Source: Schmidtea polychroa (taxonomy: Eukaryota). From it: a stretch of 64,000 bases of DNA. Position numbers and translations under genes: made by a program. The stretch is taken from the NCBI GenBank assembly GCA_044892525.1, contig CM097888.1:60016001-60080000 (forward strand). The letters are read 5' to 3'. This document shows positions 1 to 58,600 of the stretch, piece by piece. Position 1 is the first letter of the stretch, and every line of letters starts with the position of its first letter. The notes under the pieces are model-generated. The model worked only from the letters and a program-made list of their open reading frames with translations. It searched no databases and was not told the DNA's origin.

Positions 1-162
1 TTTTATATTTATAAAAAGAAAAAAGTTTTAAAAAAGTACTCGGCGAAATTTTGTGAGTTATGCATCGATAGAGAAAAGTTGATTTTCACATAACATTGAA
101 ATAAAAATTTAATTTTATCAATTGAGAAATTTATAGCAAAATTTTAATATATTGAATCACAG

Positions 163-726
163 ATGGACTCTTCATGGCACAAATCTCATAAATTTTATGA
201 TATTTGAGTTAATATCAAGCTCTTCCGTGCTTATTATTCAACAGTATTTATTTTAATATTTAGTTATTTCAAACAATCTAATTTTAAATTTATTACAATT
301 TTTAGAAGCAGAAATTCAGAAGTTACTCAGTCAAACTTTCTGAATCAGTATCCCCAGAAATTCGAAAGCACATTCAAGAGGTCATTCTCACTTGACGATA
401 ATTCTGCGTATCTTCCTGTAAATTCCACTACATTGACAAACAGTCCTCAACTAATAACTTTGGGATCCAGCAATGGATTTTCTGTCCATTCAAATTCTTA
501 TCAAGATAATCCAGCAATAAGCTTTGTAAGTTATCCGTCGGCTTATAATGAAATCTGTAAGCAAGATCCTCGGTCTGGGTACATGATTATGGCCCGAAAT
601 TGCGGTGAAAATAGTAATACAGATACCAATACCTTATCAAGTGGTAGTATTCCACCACCAGCGTTGCCTCCAAGACCAAATATCGATAATGAAAGTCCGA
701 TTTTACTTACTCAAAACTCAGAATAA
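163..726 (+). CDS. Last two coding exons (163-243, 306-726) of an unidentified gene entering from the left; low-complexity signalling-type C-terminal tail
   Basis: Acceptor cacAG at 161-162, donor GTattt at 244, acceptor ttttAG at 304-305. The only open frame of exon 163-243 (WTLHGTNLINFMIFELISSSSVLIIQ) joins in phase (CA|A) to the frame ending ...GYMIMARN...PPPALPPRPNIDNESPILLTQNSE*. AATAAA overlaps the stop. Confidence 0.7.
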
Positions 727-1124
727 AAACCTTTTATTAAATTCTCTGCAAATCATTTTTTATTCATATTGTTTTACATTTTTATACATTTATGAACGTC
801 TCATTTTTATGGCCAAATCGAATGTCAACCGAATAGTCGTTATATCAAATTTAACCATTTTGAATGCAAATATGGTGCGACGTATATTTAACACATTTGT
901 AGTAATTTTTTAAAATTTGTTAAATTTTCTATCATTATTGAGAATATTTTAAATTTTGTATATTATTAAATTGAAAAGGGAAATAAAAATAAGAAAGCAT
1001 GTCGTAATTTTATGTTTAATTGTACAAAAAATTTCTTTTCAATTTGATCACAGAATAAATTTTAATAAAAATATATAATTTTAGAGGAAGTTTCTTTGGT
1101 GCTTTATCTGGTTTTTTAATTGTT

Positions 1125-1129
<5 letters not shown>

Positions 1130-1212
<83 letters not shown>
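1130..1212. repeat. (TA)n microsatellite, about 41 units
   Basis: Directly visible. Confidence 0.99.
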
Positions 1213-1218
<6 letters not shown>

Positions 1219-1312
1219 CAAATATGTCTAACGAAATCAGTGAAGTTGCTGAAAAAATAGAATCATCAGAACTAGTTAAAGATATTGAACAAATCTGTCA
1301 AGCTCAATCAAC

Positions 1313-2444
1313 TAGAGTTTAGCGAGTCAATTAACGGTCGGTTTTTAACCCCTGTTTTCGGTTTTTTCTTACTTTTCCTTATTTCTGATATTTTAATGTA
1401 CTTAATAAATTTCCTCGGCAAGAAAACTTCTTATCAATGGAAAATCAAAATATTAAATTTTAAATCATTAATTATTAAAATTATTACAGTTTAATAATGT
1501 CGTCATCAAATGTATGGAAATATGCAGTAAAAAGAAAAAATCCATAAACGAAAAAATGTGAAGGTGTTTGTAACAATTGTGGATCGGCAATAAAATGTAG
1601 TGATGGATCTACAACTTCGTTGAAAAACCATATTTTAAGGCACGGTATAAAAGTAGATTCTGAAGTATGAAATGACAATATGGGTCCATCAACAACAAAG
1701 AAAGCCAAGACACTGGGCAGTTATTTTAAAATTAGCATAATTAAATGAACGAGTATTGGATATGGCCACTGACGGTGTTTCAATTCAAGCCATAACTCAT
1801 GGGTGTCCGCAGGAATTTTTCCAGGGAGACAAAAATATTTTTTTTACCAAGTAGACATTTTTTCTAGGAAGAAGAAAGTTGAAAAAAATTGCATGGGTAT
1901 AATAAATTGTTGGGACATTATACAAAATAGGTCTTTTATTCCGTTTATTTACAACATAGAACACTTTTTATTAATTTACAAAATAGAACAACTTTTTTTA
2001 TTCAATTATAAAATAAAATTACAGACTTATGAATCAAACGTTTGTGATCTTGATCAAATTTATTTAATGCATTGTTGACAATTAAACCAACGTCCACTGA
2101 TGTGGAGCGTGTTTTTTCAAACACAACCAATTTTTGTACTCGTCTTCGCTATCGCCTCTCAGATAAGTCATTGAATGTCTTAATTTTTTTGAAAGCATTT
2201 TATGGGAAAATGTAGATTATCTTAAGTTTTCAAGTTCTCATTTTTTACCGTTATATACGGAATAGAATTGAAGCAAATGCAAATAAATTGGATTTATTGG
2301 AAGTTTATTTTATGTTCTTTTCATTGAATAAATATACTTATAATATCTTAATGTATTTATACAATAATATATTAAAAAATAGACAAAATCTTCTAAAAAC
2401 CGAAAACCGCGGTTTTCAAAAAGACCGGTTTTTCCCAAACTCTA
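1313..2444 (+). mobile_element. Internally deleted hAT transposon (BED finger plus C-terminal dimerisation domain)
   Basis: Ends TAGAGTTT...AAACTCTA with AACCG/CGGTT subterminal motifs. About 1503-1660 translates SSNVWKYAVKRKNP*TKKCEGVCNNCGSAIKCSDGSTTSLKNHILRH (BED finger). About 2084-2215 translates KPTSTDVERVFSNTTNFCTRLRYRLSDKSLNVLIFLK (hAT dimerisation motif). No matching 8-bp TSD. Confidence 0.8.
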
Positions 2445-2520
2445 CTATTAGGATGTTCATCCTGTAAAACATTAAAATCAGTTTTTGTTTCCATAAATTT
2501 TATTTCAGTAAATATCAGTA

Positions 2521-3445
2521 CAGTAAAACCTCTACTTAAGACCACCTCCCTAAAGAGATCACCTCTAGTTAAGACCTCTATTTCTTCGGAACCAAATCTA
2601 CACAGTAGTTTACTGGGACAAATAACCCTCCATAATAGGACCACCCCTCTCGTTAAGACCACTTTTCGTAAAAAATATTTTTAGTTTAAATATTTTTTGT
2701 TTAAATATTTTTTTTAAATTAAAATGGGAGTAAAAAAACGAGAAAGGAGCTTACATTGAGCGAGAAGATGGATGTTATTAAATCTTCTGAGCGAGGAGAA
2801 GGACAGAGACTTATTGCAAGACGATTTTCTTGTAGTAAAACGCAAGTCCACAATATCATTGTTAACAAAGAAGAAATAAAGGAGCTTTGGAACAATAATG
2901 CAAATAAAAAACTAAAACGACTAACAAATCAGCAGTTTAAACTTATCAATGAGTATGTTCTAGAGTGGTATGAAAACAAAGTGCTGCGAGGCTTTCCTAT
3001 TAACGGAGAATTGTTGAAAGCATCAGCTAAGAAGATAGCTATTAGTCTAAACAACAATGTGTTTAAAGCTAGTAATGGCTGGTTGGAGAAATTCCTCAAG
3101 AGAAACAATATTACTTTGAGGGTTTTATCAGGTGAATCTGCTTCCGTAGAACCATCTATGCTATCTTATATTCAGCAGATTAAGAATCTTGGAATGGAAC
3201 TGGGTGACAATAAATTAGTTGACATAATGTTTCAAGCTGAACAAAAGTTGACGAATATGATAGTTTTTGATAACAGTGAAGCCAAATCGAAGAGACAAAC
3301 AACATTAGATGAGTTTTTATAGTAAAATCTTCAATTTAAGTCTAGTTTTCTTTATAAAAATAAAATCCTCTCTAATAGGACAACCTCTAGTAAAGACCAC
3401 TTTTGGTCCGGAACCAAGGGTGGTCCTATTAGAGAGGTTTCACTG
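2521..3445 (+). mobile_element. Tigger/pogo-like deletion derivative, 925 bp, with TIRs and TA TSD
   Basis: TA|CAGTAAAACCTCT...AGAGGTTTCACTG|TA. ORF 2756-3322 has HTH-psq and CENP-B HTH motifs (GFPINGELLKASA, FKASNGWLEKFLKRNNI) fused to a Tigger-type C-terminus (KRQTTLDEFL). No DDE domain. Confidence 0.9.
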
Positions 3446-3802
3446 TATCAAATTATATCTTCTTAAAACTTTCTTATTTAAACAAATTTTCTACGAAGAT
3501 ATTTTTAATTAAAAAATCTTATTTTAAAAATTAATCTAAAATTTAATTTTTAAAATTTTCAATTTAAAAATTTCTTCATCATAAAACTTCCTCATATCTA
3601 CAATCAACAGATGTCATAAATAAATACTACATTTTAATATCGAATTGTATCTTATGACTATATATAAGTTGTACAGAAACATGAGATAGGTTCCACAAAT
3701 AAAAACTCCTACAAAATTTAGTAATTAAAGAATCAAAATCAAGTTTTGTAGTTTAGTACATATACCCATACATATTTTAGTTATTAAATTTTTCATACAG
3801 AT

Positions 3803-6461
3803 TTAAAATGCACAACCATGACTTATTTCTTCCATTGTAATAGCATATGCTAGATAGCCGAGTCCTGAACCGCCTTCATCTTCAGGAGCAATCAGAGACA
3901 AGAGGCCGATTTTGGTCAATTTTTTAACCTATATTCACTGGTAAATTATTTAATTTTAAATTGTTTTTATAGTTTTAAAAAATTTAAAACCATTTATATC
4001 ACATAAAAAATGTAGTTAGTTTTTTACTGAACGATATCAGTAATTTATTCGATTGCTTTTTCCAATAATACAAGTTACCAAGATCCTCTAATTCTTTTAA
4101 ATTATTTTTTTATATAAATTTAATAAATTTTTCCTTTATGAAAATAAATCATAAATAAATATATTTTCATGTCATTAAAAATATTATTAACATTAAAAAA
4201 TTAAAAATATTTTAAAAAACCTTTTAATAATTGTAAATTCAGTGACAAATGTAACTTTTAAATTACAAACTACCCATAATGCATCCGTGTCACACATAAT
4301 TATTGATAGCTGGTGTATACGACTAAGCTTGAATCCTGAAATAAATATGATTGAAAATGAAGAAAATTTAGCTTTTAATCACATTTATCGATACACATAT
4401 CAAAATGGATGCTTCTTTCTGAAAGAAACGAGGTATGTTAGGTTGGATGCGGACGCTGGTAGGAACTAAAAAAGAAGGATATTTTTGTTTACTCCTCATG
4501 CATAAAATATTTCATATTTTTCAAAGTTGTCAAAAGTTCATCATTATTCATACATTGTTGACAATCGCTTCCGTTTTTATGCGAACACAAGTAAATTTTG
4601 GCTCGAATAATGCATGAATAAATTTCAATGTACAATCCATCAAGCGAAATATTTGATTATGCATTGGAGTATGGTACGCAAAGACTGCCTCGGTAATTGC
4701 TAATTCTTTTGCGCATTTTCATTTCCCAATGTTGTTTTCATTTATGTGCTGGCTATGAACTATGATTTTTTGAGATTAATTGTCTGCGCTGGAATTCAAA
4801 TATTTTTCTTTAAATAATAAAAATTAATTTTTCTGAAATATTCACAATTTATTCTTTAATGGAGATTTCATCATTTATCCACACAACAGATCCGAATTCA
4901 ACTTAACGAAAATAATTACATAAATGAAATGAAGAATAAACAGCTCATTTATTTTGTTCGATAAAGCATTTTTACCTTCGGAAGCTATGGGGAGAATTCA
5001 ATTTTAGAAATATCACAGTGGAAGTTAATTTCAAAAACAAAACATGAAAACAAAATCGGCATCTCAGAGCTTTCAGAGATAACATGGAAAATAGAAAAAA
5101 GGATGGAAAATGCCAAAAGCAGAAATGAAAAAATGACAAATTATCCCGAGTGCCGAACTGTTAGTGATAATACAAATTATGGGTAGACAGGCATGAAAAA
5201 ATGAATTATAAAAGCAAGTCTTCTTAACAGAATCAGAAGTTAGTGGTCGAGGGAAAAATTAAAAAGATAATCCAAAAATAATTCGGAATTAGAGAAATTA
5301 AAAGTGAGAAATTAGAAATTGGAAAGAAAAGAAAATATTTGAACTAAACGGTACTGTGTAATTACCTATTTCAGTGTTGAATTGATCGTGTTGTTATAAA
5401 TCGTGTAATCAATTGTGATAATCAATAAAGATTTATATTGTCTGAGAATTGTTATTTTATGGACCAAATAAAGCACGCTTTGGAGTCAGAGATTTGATTG
5501 GTAACTTTTAAATATTACCACCAACCCAGTAACCCAACAATAGAATGGAAATTGCCTGTTCCGTTGAGTGACGGGGAGAGTTGGTGAAATTTGCCAATCG
5601 AATCTATAGTTAACTTGTAAACTCTTTATTGATTTCGAGAATTTGTAAAAATTAAATTAAATGTACTAATTTTGGAGTTGAAATAAGTGTTAAAAATAAG
5701 TGTGCAAAAATTTGGAGGAAATAAACGGTTAGAGTTTTGTTTATTTTAAAAAGTACACAAGGAATTATAAAAGATAATCTCACATCGAATTATTGAAAAC
5801 TTAAAAAAGATTACACCAGAAAAATTTAAAATTCGATAAATCCTTTGTAAGACAATTGGATTTGGCAACGACTATGATACGGAAATTGTAGAAATCCTCA
5901 CTATCAACTTAAAATTTGGAGTGGTTGAAGCTCATCAACATTACTGTGTGATTAAATCGGCAACAATTTTCTTTTTAATGGTCGACTTGAACCGAAACTT
6001 ACTATTATTGCTACTCTTTTTGATAATAAATCAAAAAAATATGTATTTTATGAGAAGTTTAAAGAACATTTTAAAGAATAAAAATAACAAAATCAGGGAA
6101 GCAAAAGTAATTTTTCCACATGTGATAAAAAAAATAAAACGAATCAAATTAATACCAAAAATAGTATATATTAGTATATATTATAGTATATATTATAATG
6201 CAAATTTTTTCTGTCAATATAATTATGAAATTATAAAAGAACAAATACTTCATCAGTTGGAAACTCCAAAATACTAGCTTTGGGAATTAATTCCTTATTA
6301 GCAAATTCTCTGTATGTTCTTTGAAGAAGCTTATGTGTTTCAGGTAAATCAGACACTGTAAACATTCTTTTAACTATTAGAGGAATTATTAAAAGCTGTA
6401 TTTAATTCTAAATCATACCCATATAATTAGGAAATTTCTTAACTAGACGTTGAAAATTCAT
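3803..6461 (-). pseudogene. Truncated tandem paralog of ACADS; exons 6461-6419, 6373-6249, 3928-3803; 97 aa; pseudogene or microprotein
   Basis: Spliced translation MNFQRLVKKFPNYMVKRMFTVSDLPETHKLLQRTYREFANKELIPKASILEFPTDE|[41 protein letters not shown]. All GT-AG sites are intact, and intron phases match ACADS introns 1-2. Confidence 0.9.
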
Positions 6462-7659: not shown

Positions 7660-9950
7660 GATTTGATACCAAAGATCAAGATTAGAATCAGAGTGTGAAT
7701 CAATAAAACTTTTCATTATTGTCTTAATTTAAAACCACGACACAACTGTATATCCACTAAATTGCAAATTATCCAAAATTACTCAACAGTCGTCTTCAAA
7801 AAACTTGTAGAACCAGCTGGTTGTATCGGGTTATTTCAGGTCGATTCACCTGAATTCATCACTCCAAAAGAAGGGTCAATTATCTTCCATGAATTTTGTT
7901 GTAGACACCAGTTGTTACGTATATGTATTACCAGTCAATTTATTCAAAAAGATTTAGTTAATTGATAAAATAGAAGGAACAGAATTCCAAGATATAAAAA
8001 CAATAGGAATTATTCTTAAATTAAATTCACCTTGGGTGTCGGCTTTATATGTGATACATAAAAATGATGGATCTTGGCAACCACACAGTTACTGTAGAAA
8101 GTTAAATGCCGTCAGAGGACTAGACACTTACTCTATGGCACTGATTCATGACATCACGACGAGATTTGAAAGATACTCCGCTTTTTCTAAACTGGATTTG
8201 AGACAAGTCTTTAATCAAGTGCCAATAGCACCCAAAGACAGTTCGAAGGCCGCGATAACAACTCCCTTCGGATTATTTGAATATCCTCAAGTGCCTTTCC
8301 CATTTTCAAATGCTGCACAGATTTTTCATAGGTTCACTGATCAGGTACTACTACATCTTTATTCTGTGGCGGTATATGTCGATGACATAAATCCATAATC
8401 GCATAAAGCATTTGTCAGAACTTTTCCATCGACTTTAAAATCAGAATATGCACATCAATCAATTAAAATTTTCTCTTGACAAGTACTCAGCACCATTCAT
8501 TGGACAATTAATACGAATAAAAGCCTCGTCCGGAGAATATCAAAATTGCCAAGGAGTTTCCCAGACCTCAAACAATAACACAATTGGGCAACTTTATAGG
8601 TTTGATTTATTTCTATCATAATTTTATTAAGAACTACCTTGGACTTCTGACTTCTTATTCTACAATTATGTACGGTCCTAAGTATGATGTTGAAACTTGA
8701 ACAAAAGAAAGAGAAGAAGCCTTTATTAACTCTCAATATGCTCTAGTGCTGATATTAGTGTCAAAGTTTCCGGTGCAAAATGTCGAATAAAATCTTACCA
8801 CAGAAGCCTCAGACATAACTATAGAGATATTGTTACATCGACGTAGCAAGTTTTACATTAGTGCTTTTTTTTGCAATGCAAACGGAAGTATTTGATGTTT
8901 GATAGAGAGCTTTTGGGAATCACAGTCAATAAAATATTTTCAATACATGATGGAAGAGTGATTGTTTGTTACTTATACTAACCACAAACCACCCACTAGA
9001 CAACAAAGATAGCTATATGTCCGAGTTTGATTGTCAAATCAGGTTTATCTAATGTCGCAATAATATTGTAGCTAATTGTTTCGTAGAGCAATAGAGCAAT
9101 TAAAAAAAGTACCTTCAAGAAATGGATTGATTAACAAGTCTCTGATTATAAAATAGACAGATGGTGTCCTATAATATACGTCTATTCAATGTATCGCGCG
9201 CCCTGTTTTTGGAAAGAACCTTCAATATTTGGCATTCAGTTCGAACCACGAACTTATGAATATCCGTGGAAGAGTTTACTGAAAATCAGTGAGACAAGAC
9301 ACCAAAAACTGTTATAAATCAAGACAGCCTTGCTAATTTTAGAAGATCGTACGCCAGAGCATTTGCATTTCGAATTCGATCTATTCAAGAATCTATCAGT
9401 CCTATGATTATAATCCAATTACCCTCCAATTCAATACCCCAGAGAAATTACCGCAATTTAAAGAATTCGCAAAGAAATCGACAAGTATGATTGGACAAAA
9501 ACGCCGCCTACGTATTATTTTGATAGAAAACACATAATGTTAAAAGCGTCTAACCATGATATTATCACGATTTTAGATAAACCTGATATGGCAATCAAAC
9601 TAGAGTGTATAGCCAAGCTGTCGCTGTAGTCTAGTGAACGGTCAATTGAGTATTGTCATGGAGGACACATATTCCGACACAACCAAAGTATCCAGATCCT
9701 CCAACCTTACAAGATTTCATTTTTGGACCAGAGATACAAATCCATTTTACTTAACTAACAAACCACATATTACAATGAAATTTTCAAACTGTGAAGCGAT
9801 TTTGATCTGTTCATTATAAGATTCATCTGAGCCGCCAATGTATCATGAACTTTACAAGCTAGTAGAAGCAATCACAACAGTCAGACGCTCTTCAGCAGGT
9901 ATTTTGTCAAAGATATTTGCCAATAAGTTTTATATAGGAGGGGACATTAC
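7660..9950 (+). mobile_element. Degenerate Ty3/Gypsy LTR retrotransposon (gag, RT, RNase H and integrase remnants)
   Basis: 8036-8398 has Gypsy RT motifs (FSKLDLRQVFNQVP, TTPFGLFEY, YVDDI). RNase H-like remnants at about 8790-9070, purine tract at about 9935. Many stops and frameshifts. Confidence 0.8.
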
Positions 9951-10153: not shown

Positions 10154-43461
<33,308 letters not shown>

Positions 43462-55600: not shown

Positions 55601-58600
55601 TCGGTTTTTTAACATTTCACAGTAAAAACCCCGAAAATGGAAAAATTTATTTTATTTTAAACAACTATTTTAAAAGAACTATTTAAATTTCTTCGAAATA
55701 TAGCAATTTTAAAATAATATAAAACTAAATTGTTTGAATTAAACAAATTGTTATAATGTAAACGGGTGCAAAATAAATAGGTTAAAACATGTCATTATTT
55801 CATTTATTCAATAATTATACATATAATTATTATCCATAATATGAAATAATTGAAAATAAATCAAATTATAACATTGTTCGTCTTTTGAAACTCTATCATT
55901 AAAATGCAAATTTTCTCCAAAAAATATTCACTTTAATATCTTTAGAAAATAAAAGATAATTTAAATTTAAAATTTTATTTTATTTTTACTAATTATTCAA
56001 AATGTGAAAAAAAATTTTATTTTAACAAATTTATAAGTTAAAATTCATTTTTAATAAAAAATTTTAGAAATTTATATTTAATTGATTTTTAATTGTCCTT
56101 ACGATTTTGCAATTGTGAAATTAAATTATAAATCAAAACAACATTATTTACATATTATTGATTGATGATAAATTGTAAGTAGTAACTAATCGAATTAAAA
56201 TGAAGATAAAAATTGGAAAACTCAAAGTACCTTTTGGAGGTTGTAACTTTCTATTGTTATTCTCACACCAACCAGTTGGGAAGATTAATTGTGAATCTGA
56301 TAATGTCCAAAAATCAAATTGATCTTGATAACCATCAAAGTGCAATCGTAATCGACTACCTAAAATCTCAACAATTGTCAGTACGCAGAATAAACTTTCA
56401 TTGTTCGGATCAATTCCTTCAAGTTTTTGATTTACAGAGAATTTATATTTTGAATTGTATTCCATCTGTATATAAAATTACAAATAATTCATTCAAAGCC
56501 GAAAAATAGAAAAAAATATGGATTGACTTTTTAATCAAATTATCATTAGCTTGTATTTGGCTTGTACTTACTGTTTTGTGGAAACATTTTTTCAATGTTT
56601 AATATTTTATTAAGATATCACAAATGAACTTCTTCCACAAATAACCAATGTAATTGAAAAGGTTAAACGAGATGGTAAACTGTACAAGGGATATTACTGT
56701 GGCAATAAACTATAGAAAGCTGTATGCCATTTTCTATACAATTACAAATTGGATAAAAAATACTTCTGTATTTATGAGTTGTTTCGTTTTCATTAATATT
56801 CTTATCATAAAGTCAAATTCTAGGGTCTGGTTGCAAAGTCACGAATTCAATCCCAAGAGGGATCAAGTTTCTTACATGAAACCGATAAGAGCTAAGCTTC
56901 ATTTAGTTTTTGATTATAGATTAATTTTTAATATTATAAGTTTATTTTTCAAATTTCATCACTGATTTCTTTTCCATTGAAATTGTATTTTATAAAAAGC
57001 TTGAATCAGTAAATATATCAAAAATATCGATATATTTACTGATTCATAGTCAAGCTTTTTAATAAATGCTACCTCTGTTCCACAATAGTTGTCACATTTT
57101 GATACTTTTGGTCTGATTATTAAAATTGTGACAAGTATTATAGAACAAAATTTATGCATCAAATGTGACAATTATTGTGGAATGGAGGTAGTACAATTTT
57201 TTATATTCTATACAATTTTTCAACACCTTACAAAACATATGAAAAACCAGCTTTGGAACTTTTATGATAAAACATAAAATATTGATCTATATTCAAAAAC
57301 TAAATTAGGATAAATTTGTAAGTCAAAATTTTTAAATTTTAATAAAATTTGTATTTTACGAAAGGGCGAGATCTTTTTATGTATACATTGTAAAACATAG
57401 ACGTCTATTGAATAAGATAACTTTATAAATGTCCACATTTGAAAACAATATGTTAAATAAATATTCTATATTAAGTATAAATTTTACCAAAAACGCCAAT
57501 TTTGAAAAGAATATTAAAAATATAATCAAAAATTGAAATTTCGCCAAAATATAACATGAGTCACGCTTGAAAATAGTCTTGCTAAAATAAATAATCATAA
57601 TTTATAATGTGATAACTTTAAACATCTTTTCGGACGAATGTATTAAAAAAGCAAAAATACATGAATATTCTCGTTAGACTATATTTTGATCAGTTGATAT
57701 GTTTTCTGTCTAAATTTTCAATTACATTGTTAATTTTACATTTATTAATGTTTCTATTTTATAACCTTTTTCAAACAACAAATAAAATTACTTAAAACTT
57801 AAGTTTTATTTTCAACATTTTATGACATCAGTTAACTTCTTTTTTTTTAATCAATAAATTAGTTACGATTTGTTTGTTTTTATCAAAAAAAATAATTACA
57901 TAATAGTCATGTGTTATAATGAAAAAAATAAAGACAGAGCTTACATCAATGCTAGAGAATCGTATTCCAATATTGTCAAATAGTTTAGCTGGAACTGTTC
58001 TGCCATCGATTGATTTAAGATATTCCGTCCAATCAAAACTGCTAATTTTTGATTCTAGAAAAACATAAACTTACTACTTTCATTAATATAAGTAATTATA
58101 TTGATTGAGAAAATTATATTATTAGTCATTTAGTTGATTTTTCGTTTTTCATTGCTGGGATTAATATGGAACTGAAATTATAAACTATCGGATTATTATT
58201 TACCAGAAATATGGATTTATTTCGTAGTAAAAACTCTCGATCAAACATCAAATTTTTGGACAATTTATCTCTATACTTTTTCATGTTAAACATGCAATAC
58301 CTTATTTAAATTTCAATATTTTTAGTAAAATATNNNNNNNNNNNNNNNNNNNNNNNNNNNNNNNNNNNNNNNNNNNNNNNNNNNNNNNNNNNNNNNNNNN
58401 NNNNNNNNNNNNNNNNNNNNNNNNNNNNNNNNNNNNNNNNNNNNNNNNNNNNNNNNNNNNNNNNNNNNNNNNNNNNNNCTGTTTAAAAAAATAGTCAAAG
58501 AACGAAAGTTTGGTTCAAAAGTGGCAATTTATGAAAAACAAAAATAAGTTTAAATATCATTAAAATGTTTGATTTCAAAAAAGATTGGACATAGAAATTA

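Follow-up and report, generated by a model that had tools for sequence, protein, structure and literature searches.

Unprocessed pseudogenes and the relics of tandem duplications adjoin their parent gene in the same orientation, keep parental introns, lack part of the gene and have lost the constraint on invariant residues. Truncated paralogues are also the source of certain microproteins, such as the plant LITTLE ZIPPER and the animal Id proteins, which titrate a multimeric parent and in which a complete interaction domain is kept. In the ACAD family, the contacts between subunits are made mainly via the C-terminal helical domain and FAD, as in the MCAD and SCAD structures.

A fragment of an ACADS gene was examined in a 64,000-nucleotide stretch of the Schmidtea polychroa genome (GenBank assembly accession number GCA_044892525.1; contig CM097888.1, coordinates 60016001 to 60080000), here referred to as the window and numbered from its first base. 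Like unprocessed pseudogenes and tandem relics, the fragment adjoins its parent in the same orientation, carries a parental intron, is missing part of the gene and appears to have lost constraint at invariant residues. It differs from the usual members of that class in that the duplication is unusually old, being saturated at synonymous sites and older than the genus, and in that 82 codons are free of stops and frameshifts; as so old a copy carries no such lesion, its decay appears to be recent relative to its age. The LPETH...FA.KEL and YLAYAI.MEEIS.GCA motifs of ACADS/SCAD (1JQI, 2VIG and 8SGS) are present, but the N-terminal domain is without its last third and neither the middle beta domain nor the C-terminal domain is there, and any product is predicted to be unable to bind FAD or to act as a dehydrogenase. 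One domain of a multimeric protein is kept, as the microprotein idea would have it and as in the paralogue-derived LITTLE ZIPPER and Id proteins, but unlike these the fragment lacks the parts that make the ACAD subunit contacts, namely the C-terminal helical domain and the FAD-binding regions. The fragment is probably the relic of an ancient tandem ACADS paralogue that was truncated by deletion.

The ACADS parent gene

The parent ACADS gene is located on the minus strand of the window (coordinates 10154 to 43461), where its six exons (43461-43434, 43390-43224, 20597-20259, 20216-19914, 12672-12439 and 10312-10154) were pieced together from genome-wide Pfam matches, frame translations and splice sites. 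They encode a protein of 409 aa that is 74% identical to a mollusc ACADS over 381 aa and groups with flatworm ACADS in a phylogenetic tree. The gene spans 33.3 kb and is not compact: introns 1 and 3 are 43 and 42 nt long, and the others are 22.6 kb, 7.2 kb and 2.1 kb. An AATAAA motif is present about 20 nt 3' of the stop codon.

Structure and homology of the fragment

In the preliminary description of this DNA, three minus-strand segments 3.7 kb downstream of ACADS were said to splice into an open 97-aa frame. Both the frame and its location were confirmed. When 6461-6419, 6373-6249 and 3928-3803 are joined, an open frame of 294 nt is obtained that ends in GCAF and a stop codon, with GT directly after both donors and AG directly before both acceptors. 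From the parental stop codon at 10154 it is 3.69 kb to the ATG at 6461, and the frame runs in the same direction as the parent gene.

The second of these segments (coordinates 6249 to 6373, minus strand) is a homologue of parental exon 2 covering parent residues 20-65, less four codons removed in frame. The third includes a homologue of parental exon 3 (from 3809 or 3810 to 3928, minus strand) that covers parent residues 66-105, the first third of the parental exon; it is followed, just beyond the point where the homology breaks off, by a single non-homologous codon and a stop (TTT TAA; coordinates 3803 to 3808, minus strand). Intron 2 lies between them (coordinates 3929 to 6248, minus strand) and is 2,320 nt long, against 22.6 kb in the parent, with a repeat inside it at about 5032-5543. 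In tblastn searches, exon 2 (about 6374-6246) was 57% identical to the neighbouring ACADS over 47 aa (E 7e-12) and exon 3 (about 3928-3809) was 70% identical over 40 aa (E 1e-12), so that together the two exons are homologous to parent residues 20-105. Intron 2 interrupts the frame at the same codon boundary and in the same phase as the parental exon 2/3 boundary; homology to a parent gene together with an intron at a parental position is what characterises an unprocessed duplicated pseudogene or gene relic.

The predicted product matched the Pfam Acyl-CoA_dh_N profile (PF02771; E 1.3e-15), though only at profile positions 2-76 of 113, and its best matches among solved structures were rat and human SCAD (E about 1e-20), with fragment residues 21-96 aligned to residues 7-86 of rat SCAD (1JQI). 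In the tree the fragment was sister to the ACADS of the window (SH-aLRT 91), identifying it as a lineage-specific duplicate, and its end branch was 1.46 long compared with 0.21 for the parent.

Several details given earlier were upheld by the alignment and others needed correction. Six synonymous changes across the 10 codons of SDLPE(S/T)HKLL were found as reported, and the frame is indeed free of frameshifts, as the 82 aligned codons contain neither a stop nor a frameshift and the sole indel is in frame. That indel is a deletion of four codons (12 nt), not of five. The identity, given there as about 52 of 72 residues, becomes 55 of 82 aligned residues. The claim that intron phases are shared holds fully for intron 2, with the same boundary and phase, but intron 1 has the parental phase at a site 30 nt further 3'.

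Proposed exon 1, intron 1 and presequence

The first segment of the frame is a hypothetical exon (coordinates 6419 to 6461, minus strand) consisting of an ATG and 14 further codons, open throughout, ending in phase 1 and followed directly by GT. The proposed intron 1 (coordinates 6374 to 6418, minus strand; GTATGA...AATAG) is 45 nt long, in line with the mini-introns of 42-43 nt in the parent; it is situated 30 nt 3' of parental intron 1, and the unspliced frame there carries stops. Neither exon 1 nor the 400 nt upstream of it showed similarity to parental exon 1 or its upstream region above that of dinucleotide shuffles. A rescue exon of this kind (a mini-exon that starts with ATG and ends at a phase 1 GT donor, plus an intron of 40-120 nt) could be drawn upstream of 40% of the AGs in the window. 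Because so many AG dinucleotides in AT-rich DNA permit such an exon, exon 1 carries no evidential weight.

A basic presequence, re-written relative to that of the parent, had also been proposed. The N-terminus is basic and free of acidic residues, but the exon that encodes it has no similarity to parental exon 1, and an N-terminus as basic as this was found in 4% of random ATG-initiated ORFs of the window, which makes it suggestive at most of a targeting presequence. Judged on its sequence, exon 1 is indistinguishable from chance, and its putative presequence may be so too.

Probable truncation of the gene

The homology to ACADS breaks off abruptly at 3809/3810, within parental exon 3, leaving one codon before the stop. 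The abrupt end at GCAF, described previously, is thus real, and nothing further of the gene was found in window positions 1-3809 or in the next 40 kb downstream. The loss of the FAD-binding, beta-sheet and catalytic C-terminal domains was borne out in the same way, as there was no PF02770 or PF00441 match near the fragment. What remains had been described as the N-terminal helical domain only; no other domain is indeed present, but the domain itself is retained for just two thirds of its length (profile positions 2-76 of 113). A functional ACADS has complete PF02771, PF02770 and PF00441 domains with the catalytic base and FAD contacts, and this set is not present in the fragment. About 300 of the 409 codons are absent and the break falls in the middle of exon 3, a disabling lesion of the sort seen in gene relics.

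The whole genome sequence (781,270,316 bases in 1,012 contigs) was searched for the missing part. Searches of these 781 Mb with exons 3b, 4, 5 and 6 recovered only the parent and distant family members with 34-67% identity, where the 67% match spans just 36 residues. A genome-wide Pfam search with the three ACAD domains found no orphan ACAD exons near the fragment; PF02770 and PF00441 matches in this part of chromosome scaffold C4 were confined to the parental exons, and all others were on C1-C3. Retention of the rest of the gene nearby, or its relocation, was rejected on these grounds. Transposon insertion was rejected as the cause of the truncation: the 210 nt adjoining the break (3599-3808) are single-copy sequence, and no repeat comes closer than the one at 3445-3598. 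The simplest explanation is a deletion or rearrangement.

The genome-wide search also listed a single weak Acyl-CoA_dh_N match (E 0.04; profile positions 45-113) on C1 (coordinates 247404845-247405090, minus strand). No match to the middle or C-terminal domain was listed close to it, and it may represent a further ACAD relic or a diverged member of the family. The chromosome scaffolds of the assembly are 271.6, 189.7, 144.6 and 93.1 Mb long.

Age of the duplication and past selection

Over the 82 aligned codons, the Nei-Gojobori method gave a pS of 0.67 and a pN of 0.18 between fragment and parent, corresponding to a dN of 0.21 and a nominal dS of 1.66. The pairwise dN/dS was 0.13 (bootstrap 0.05-0.27), with values of 0.18 for exon 2 and 0.09 for exon 3. 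The same codon was used at 28 of the 55 identical residues, compared with 27.2 expected from codon usage, and four-fold sites were identical in 9 of 28 cases, compared with 9.3 expected from composition. The synonymous sites of the two copies are therefore fully saturated. No significant similarity was found between the introns of fragment and parent, none exceeding that of dinucleotide shuffles; a blastn alignment extended 70 nt into the intron but was not significant by itself. As the four Schmidtea species S. polychroa, S. mediterranea, S. nova and S. lugubris are only 0.3-0.6 substitutions per four-fold site apart (PMC11410931), saturated synonymous sites and introns that can no longer be aligned indicate that the duplication long predates the genus.

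When neutral drift was simulated to K = 1, 17% identity was left and the frame was open in 0.1% of trials. The synonymous sites and introns have been randomised, yet 55 of 82 residues are kept, which excludes a duplicate that was dead on arrival. Purifying selection thus acted on the copy through most of its very long history. The preliminary description had looked to dN/dS against ACADS as a guide to function; the pairwise value of 0.13 does point to selection in the past, but it is an average over a mostly old path and is silent on the period since truncation. An old duplicate that was truncated recently, one of the two possibilities raised there, fits the saturated synonymous sites, the past selection, the later disregard of conserved positions and the disappearance of the rest of the gene.

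Apparent later release from constraint

Changes on either side were assigned by comparison with 114 metazoan ACADS sequences. The 28 differences between fragment and parent comprised 18 specific to the fragment, three specific to the parent and seven that were ambiguous. Columns were scored as conserved when at least 90% of the reference sequences agreed, and 82 columns were counted, residue 97 being left out as it is past the homology break. The fragment had changed at 8 of 40 conserved columns and at 9-16 of 42 variable columns (Fisher p 1.0 to 0.09), whereas the parent had changed at only one of the 40 conserved columns (p 0.03 versus the fragment). The four-codon deletion removes a (K/R)-E-H motif from a conserved loop, the His of which is present in 106 of 114 ACADS, and the Asp beside the deletion, found in 114 of 114 ACADS, is Glu in the fragment. 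Conserved columns were still kept in 32 of 40 cases and 22 of 27 replacements were achievable in a single step. The substitutions particular to the fragment thus seem to disregard site conservation in ACADS, as would follow from a loss of ACADS-type constraint.

Unconstrained change of about 0.1 substitutions per site would produce the 20% rate seen at conserved columns. This amount of drift is comparable to the length of the S. polychroa branch after its split from S. mediterranea (half of 0.3; PMC11410931). When drift to K = 0.11 was simulated, 78% identity to the starting sequence was left and 18-28% of trials had no stop, so that an open frame is unremarkable, the more so as the finding was itself selected for an intact frame. 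Among 21 copies of a 187-nt repeat compared in pairs, there were 0.018 gap events per substitution, and the corresponding figure from a published trio study is about 0.1 indels per SNV (PMC10899757). With so wide a range of indel rates (0.02 to 0.1 per substitution), the lack of a frameshift is only weak evidence.

Expression and protein searches

Sequencing runs guessed to be RNA contained 0-2% of the sampled words of the locus, the three exons making up 10.7% of the stretch sampled, while DNA runs of the species contained 47-83%. The low word content of the RNA-labelled runs is a weak hint on expression. The 97-aa peptide had no similar or exact match in a protein collection that does not include the ACADS of this species, which makes the result uninformative on expression; as controls, two parental ORFs were likewise missing from the collection, and a profile that included the parental exons found no planarian ACADS there.

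Origin and fate of the fragment

Derivation of the fragment as a processed retrocopy of ACADS mRNA is hardly credible and was rejected: homology to the gene is all that speaks for it, and a processed copy would lack parental introns, whereas a 2.3-kb intron (2,320 nt) is retained here with its GT and AG exactly at the parental exon 2/3 boundary, which rules it out. A partial duplicate, in which only exons 1-3a were ever copied and have decayed neutrally since, would explain why only the 5' part is present and why it ends inside an exon. It is, however, very improbable and was rejected by the dN/dS and the simulation, as 67% of residues are kept where synonymous sites and introns are randomised, and after neutral decay to that depth identity is down to 17% and the frame is still open in 0.1% of trials. 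The fragment might instead be a relic that is transcribed, and perhaps spliced, by read-through from ACADS or from promoters of transposons close by, while being non-coding or functionless. It has the orientation of the parent and lies 3.7 kb behind it, an AATAAA is found about 20 nt 3' of the parental stop, transposon remnants are present on its flanks (repeats at 3445-3598 and 5032-5543, Tc5 HTH at 2756-3322 and reverse transcriptase at 8036-8398) and its splice sites are still intact, but the RNA-labelled runs contain next to none of the words of the locus, and a relic of this kind is rather unlikely.

The contrasting possibility, that the truncated gene has been retained, would have the fragment encode an expressed and selected protein of 80-97 aa comprising the first four helices or so, with or without a presequence, which might function by itself as a microprotein or form the 5' part of a chimeric transcript. 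An open frame with an in-frame indel only and an intact GT/AG at intron 2 would be expected of such a gene, and these features count against a relic, their joint probability under pure drift being roughly 0.05-0.15. Selection on a truncated ORF would likewise lead one to expect the homology to end right at the stop, as it does to within two codons, and a 45-nt intron of the size class typical of this genome can be drawn together with a basic, acid-free N-terminus. A pairwise dN/dS of 0.13 in spite of saturated dS, the 32 of 40 conserved columns kept and the 22 of 27 single-step replacements would also fit a retained gene. However, the low dN/dS averages a mostly old path and says nothing of the period since truncation, the fragment-specific changes do not avoid invariant columns, and a conserved motif has been deleted. 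It is doubtful that a domain ending at profile position 76 of 113 would fold independently, exon 1 does not rise above chance, and no RNA-labelled run contains the exons (at most 0.02 of words). No similar short protein was found in the collection either, a weak blank given that this species is not included in it. Retention of a truncated gene is considered unlikely, and the more specific proposal of an ACADS-derived protein of 80-97 residues that has been selected in Schmidtea since long before the genus diversified is quite unlikely. The idea of a concealed but spliceable microprotein that carries a presequence and influences tetramer assembly received no positive support.

We infer that the copy was once full length, was truncated by deletion and is now functionless. 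The course of events would have begun with a tandem duplication of ACADS at the DNA level, with introns kept, in a flatworm or triclad ancestor long before Schmidtea. Both copies would have been retained for a long period, the second under purifying selection and presumably as a full-length enzyme, until a deletion or rearrangement on the branch to this genome took away the sequence beyond codon 105, the 3' three quarters of the second copy. Since that loss the two surviving exons would have undergone drift of roughly 0.1 substitutions per site, with a frame that is still open by chance. If there is a product, it would consist of two thirds of the N-terminal helical domain without the FAD-binding, substrate-binding and catalytic parts.

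If the fragment is such a relic, an additional short-chain acyl-CoA dehydrogenase was present in triclads over a very long period, and its loss in this lineage was fairly recent, a small point for studies of gene loss and lipid metabolism in planarians. It is also a caution for annotation, as open, spliceable frames would persist by chance in about a fifth of such stumps. Conservation and expression in sister species would instead make the fragment one of the few documented examples of a small protein derived from a piece of an enzyme; a retained truncated protein would be a new small protein, mitochondrial or cytosolic, that arose from a metabolic enzyme by truncation.

Genomic surroundings

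Two repeats are located in or close to the fragment. The dispersed repeat in intron 2 (5032-5543) had more than 1,600 first-look candidates genome-wide, and consists of a well-kept 187-nt part (87-95% identity) and an older part of 320 nt (68-81%). The other, of 154 bp (3445-3598), is situated 210 nt past the stop of the fragment and had more than 1,000 first-look candidates; the copies listed were 94-99% identical, and it matches its own opposite strand, suggesting a young MITE-like element.

Other features of mobile elements were found on the plus strand. An ORF of the pogo/Tigger type (2756-3322) encodes CENP-B_N and HTH_Tnp_Tc5 domains without a transposase core, a short ORF (2072-2215) resembles a hAT dimerisation motif by eye only, and a fragment of a reverse transcriptase (RVT_1) is present at 8036-8398. 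A further plus-strand ORF of 97 aa (433-726) is rich in Ser, Pro and Asn, is not AT-rich and has no Pfam match, and may be an exon of a neighbour on the opposite strand to the fragment. The only strong DNA matches between the surroundings of the fragment and the rest of the window were mutually matching (TA)n microsatellites (1120-1260, 23646-23711 and 28380-28422). A run of 145 N at 58334-58478 represents an assembly gap or masked sequence.
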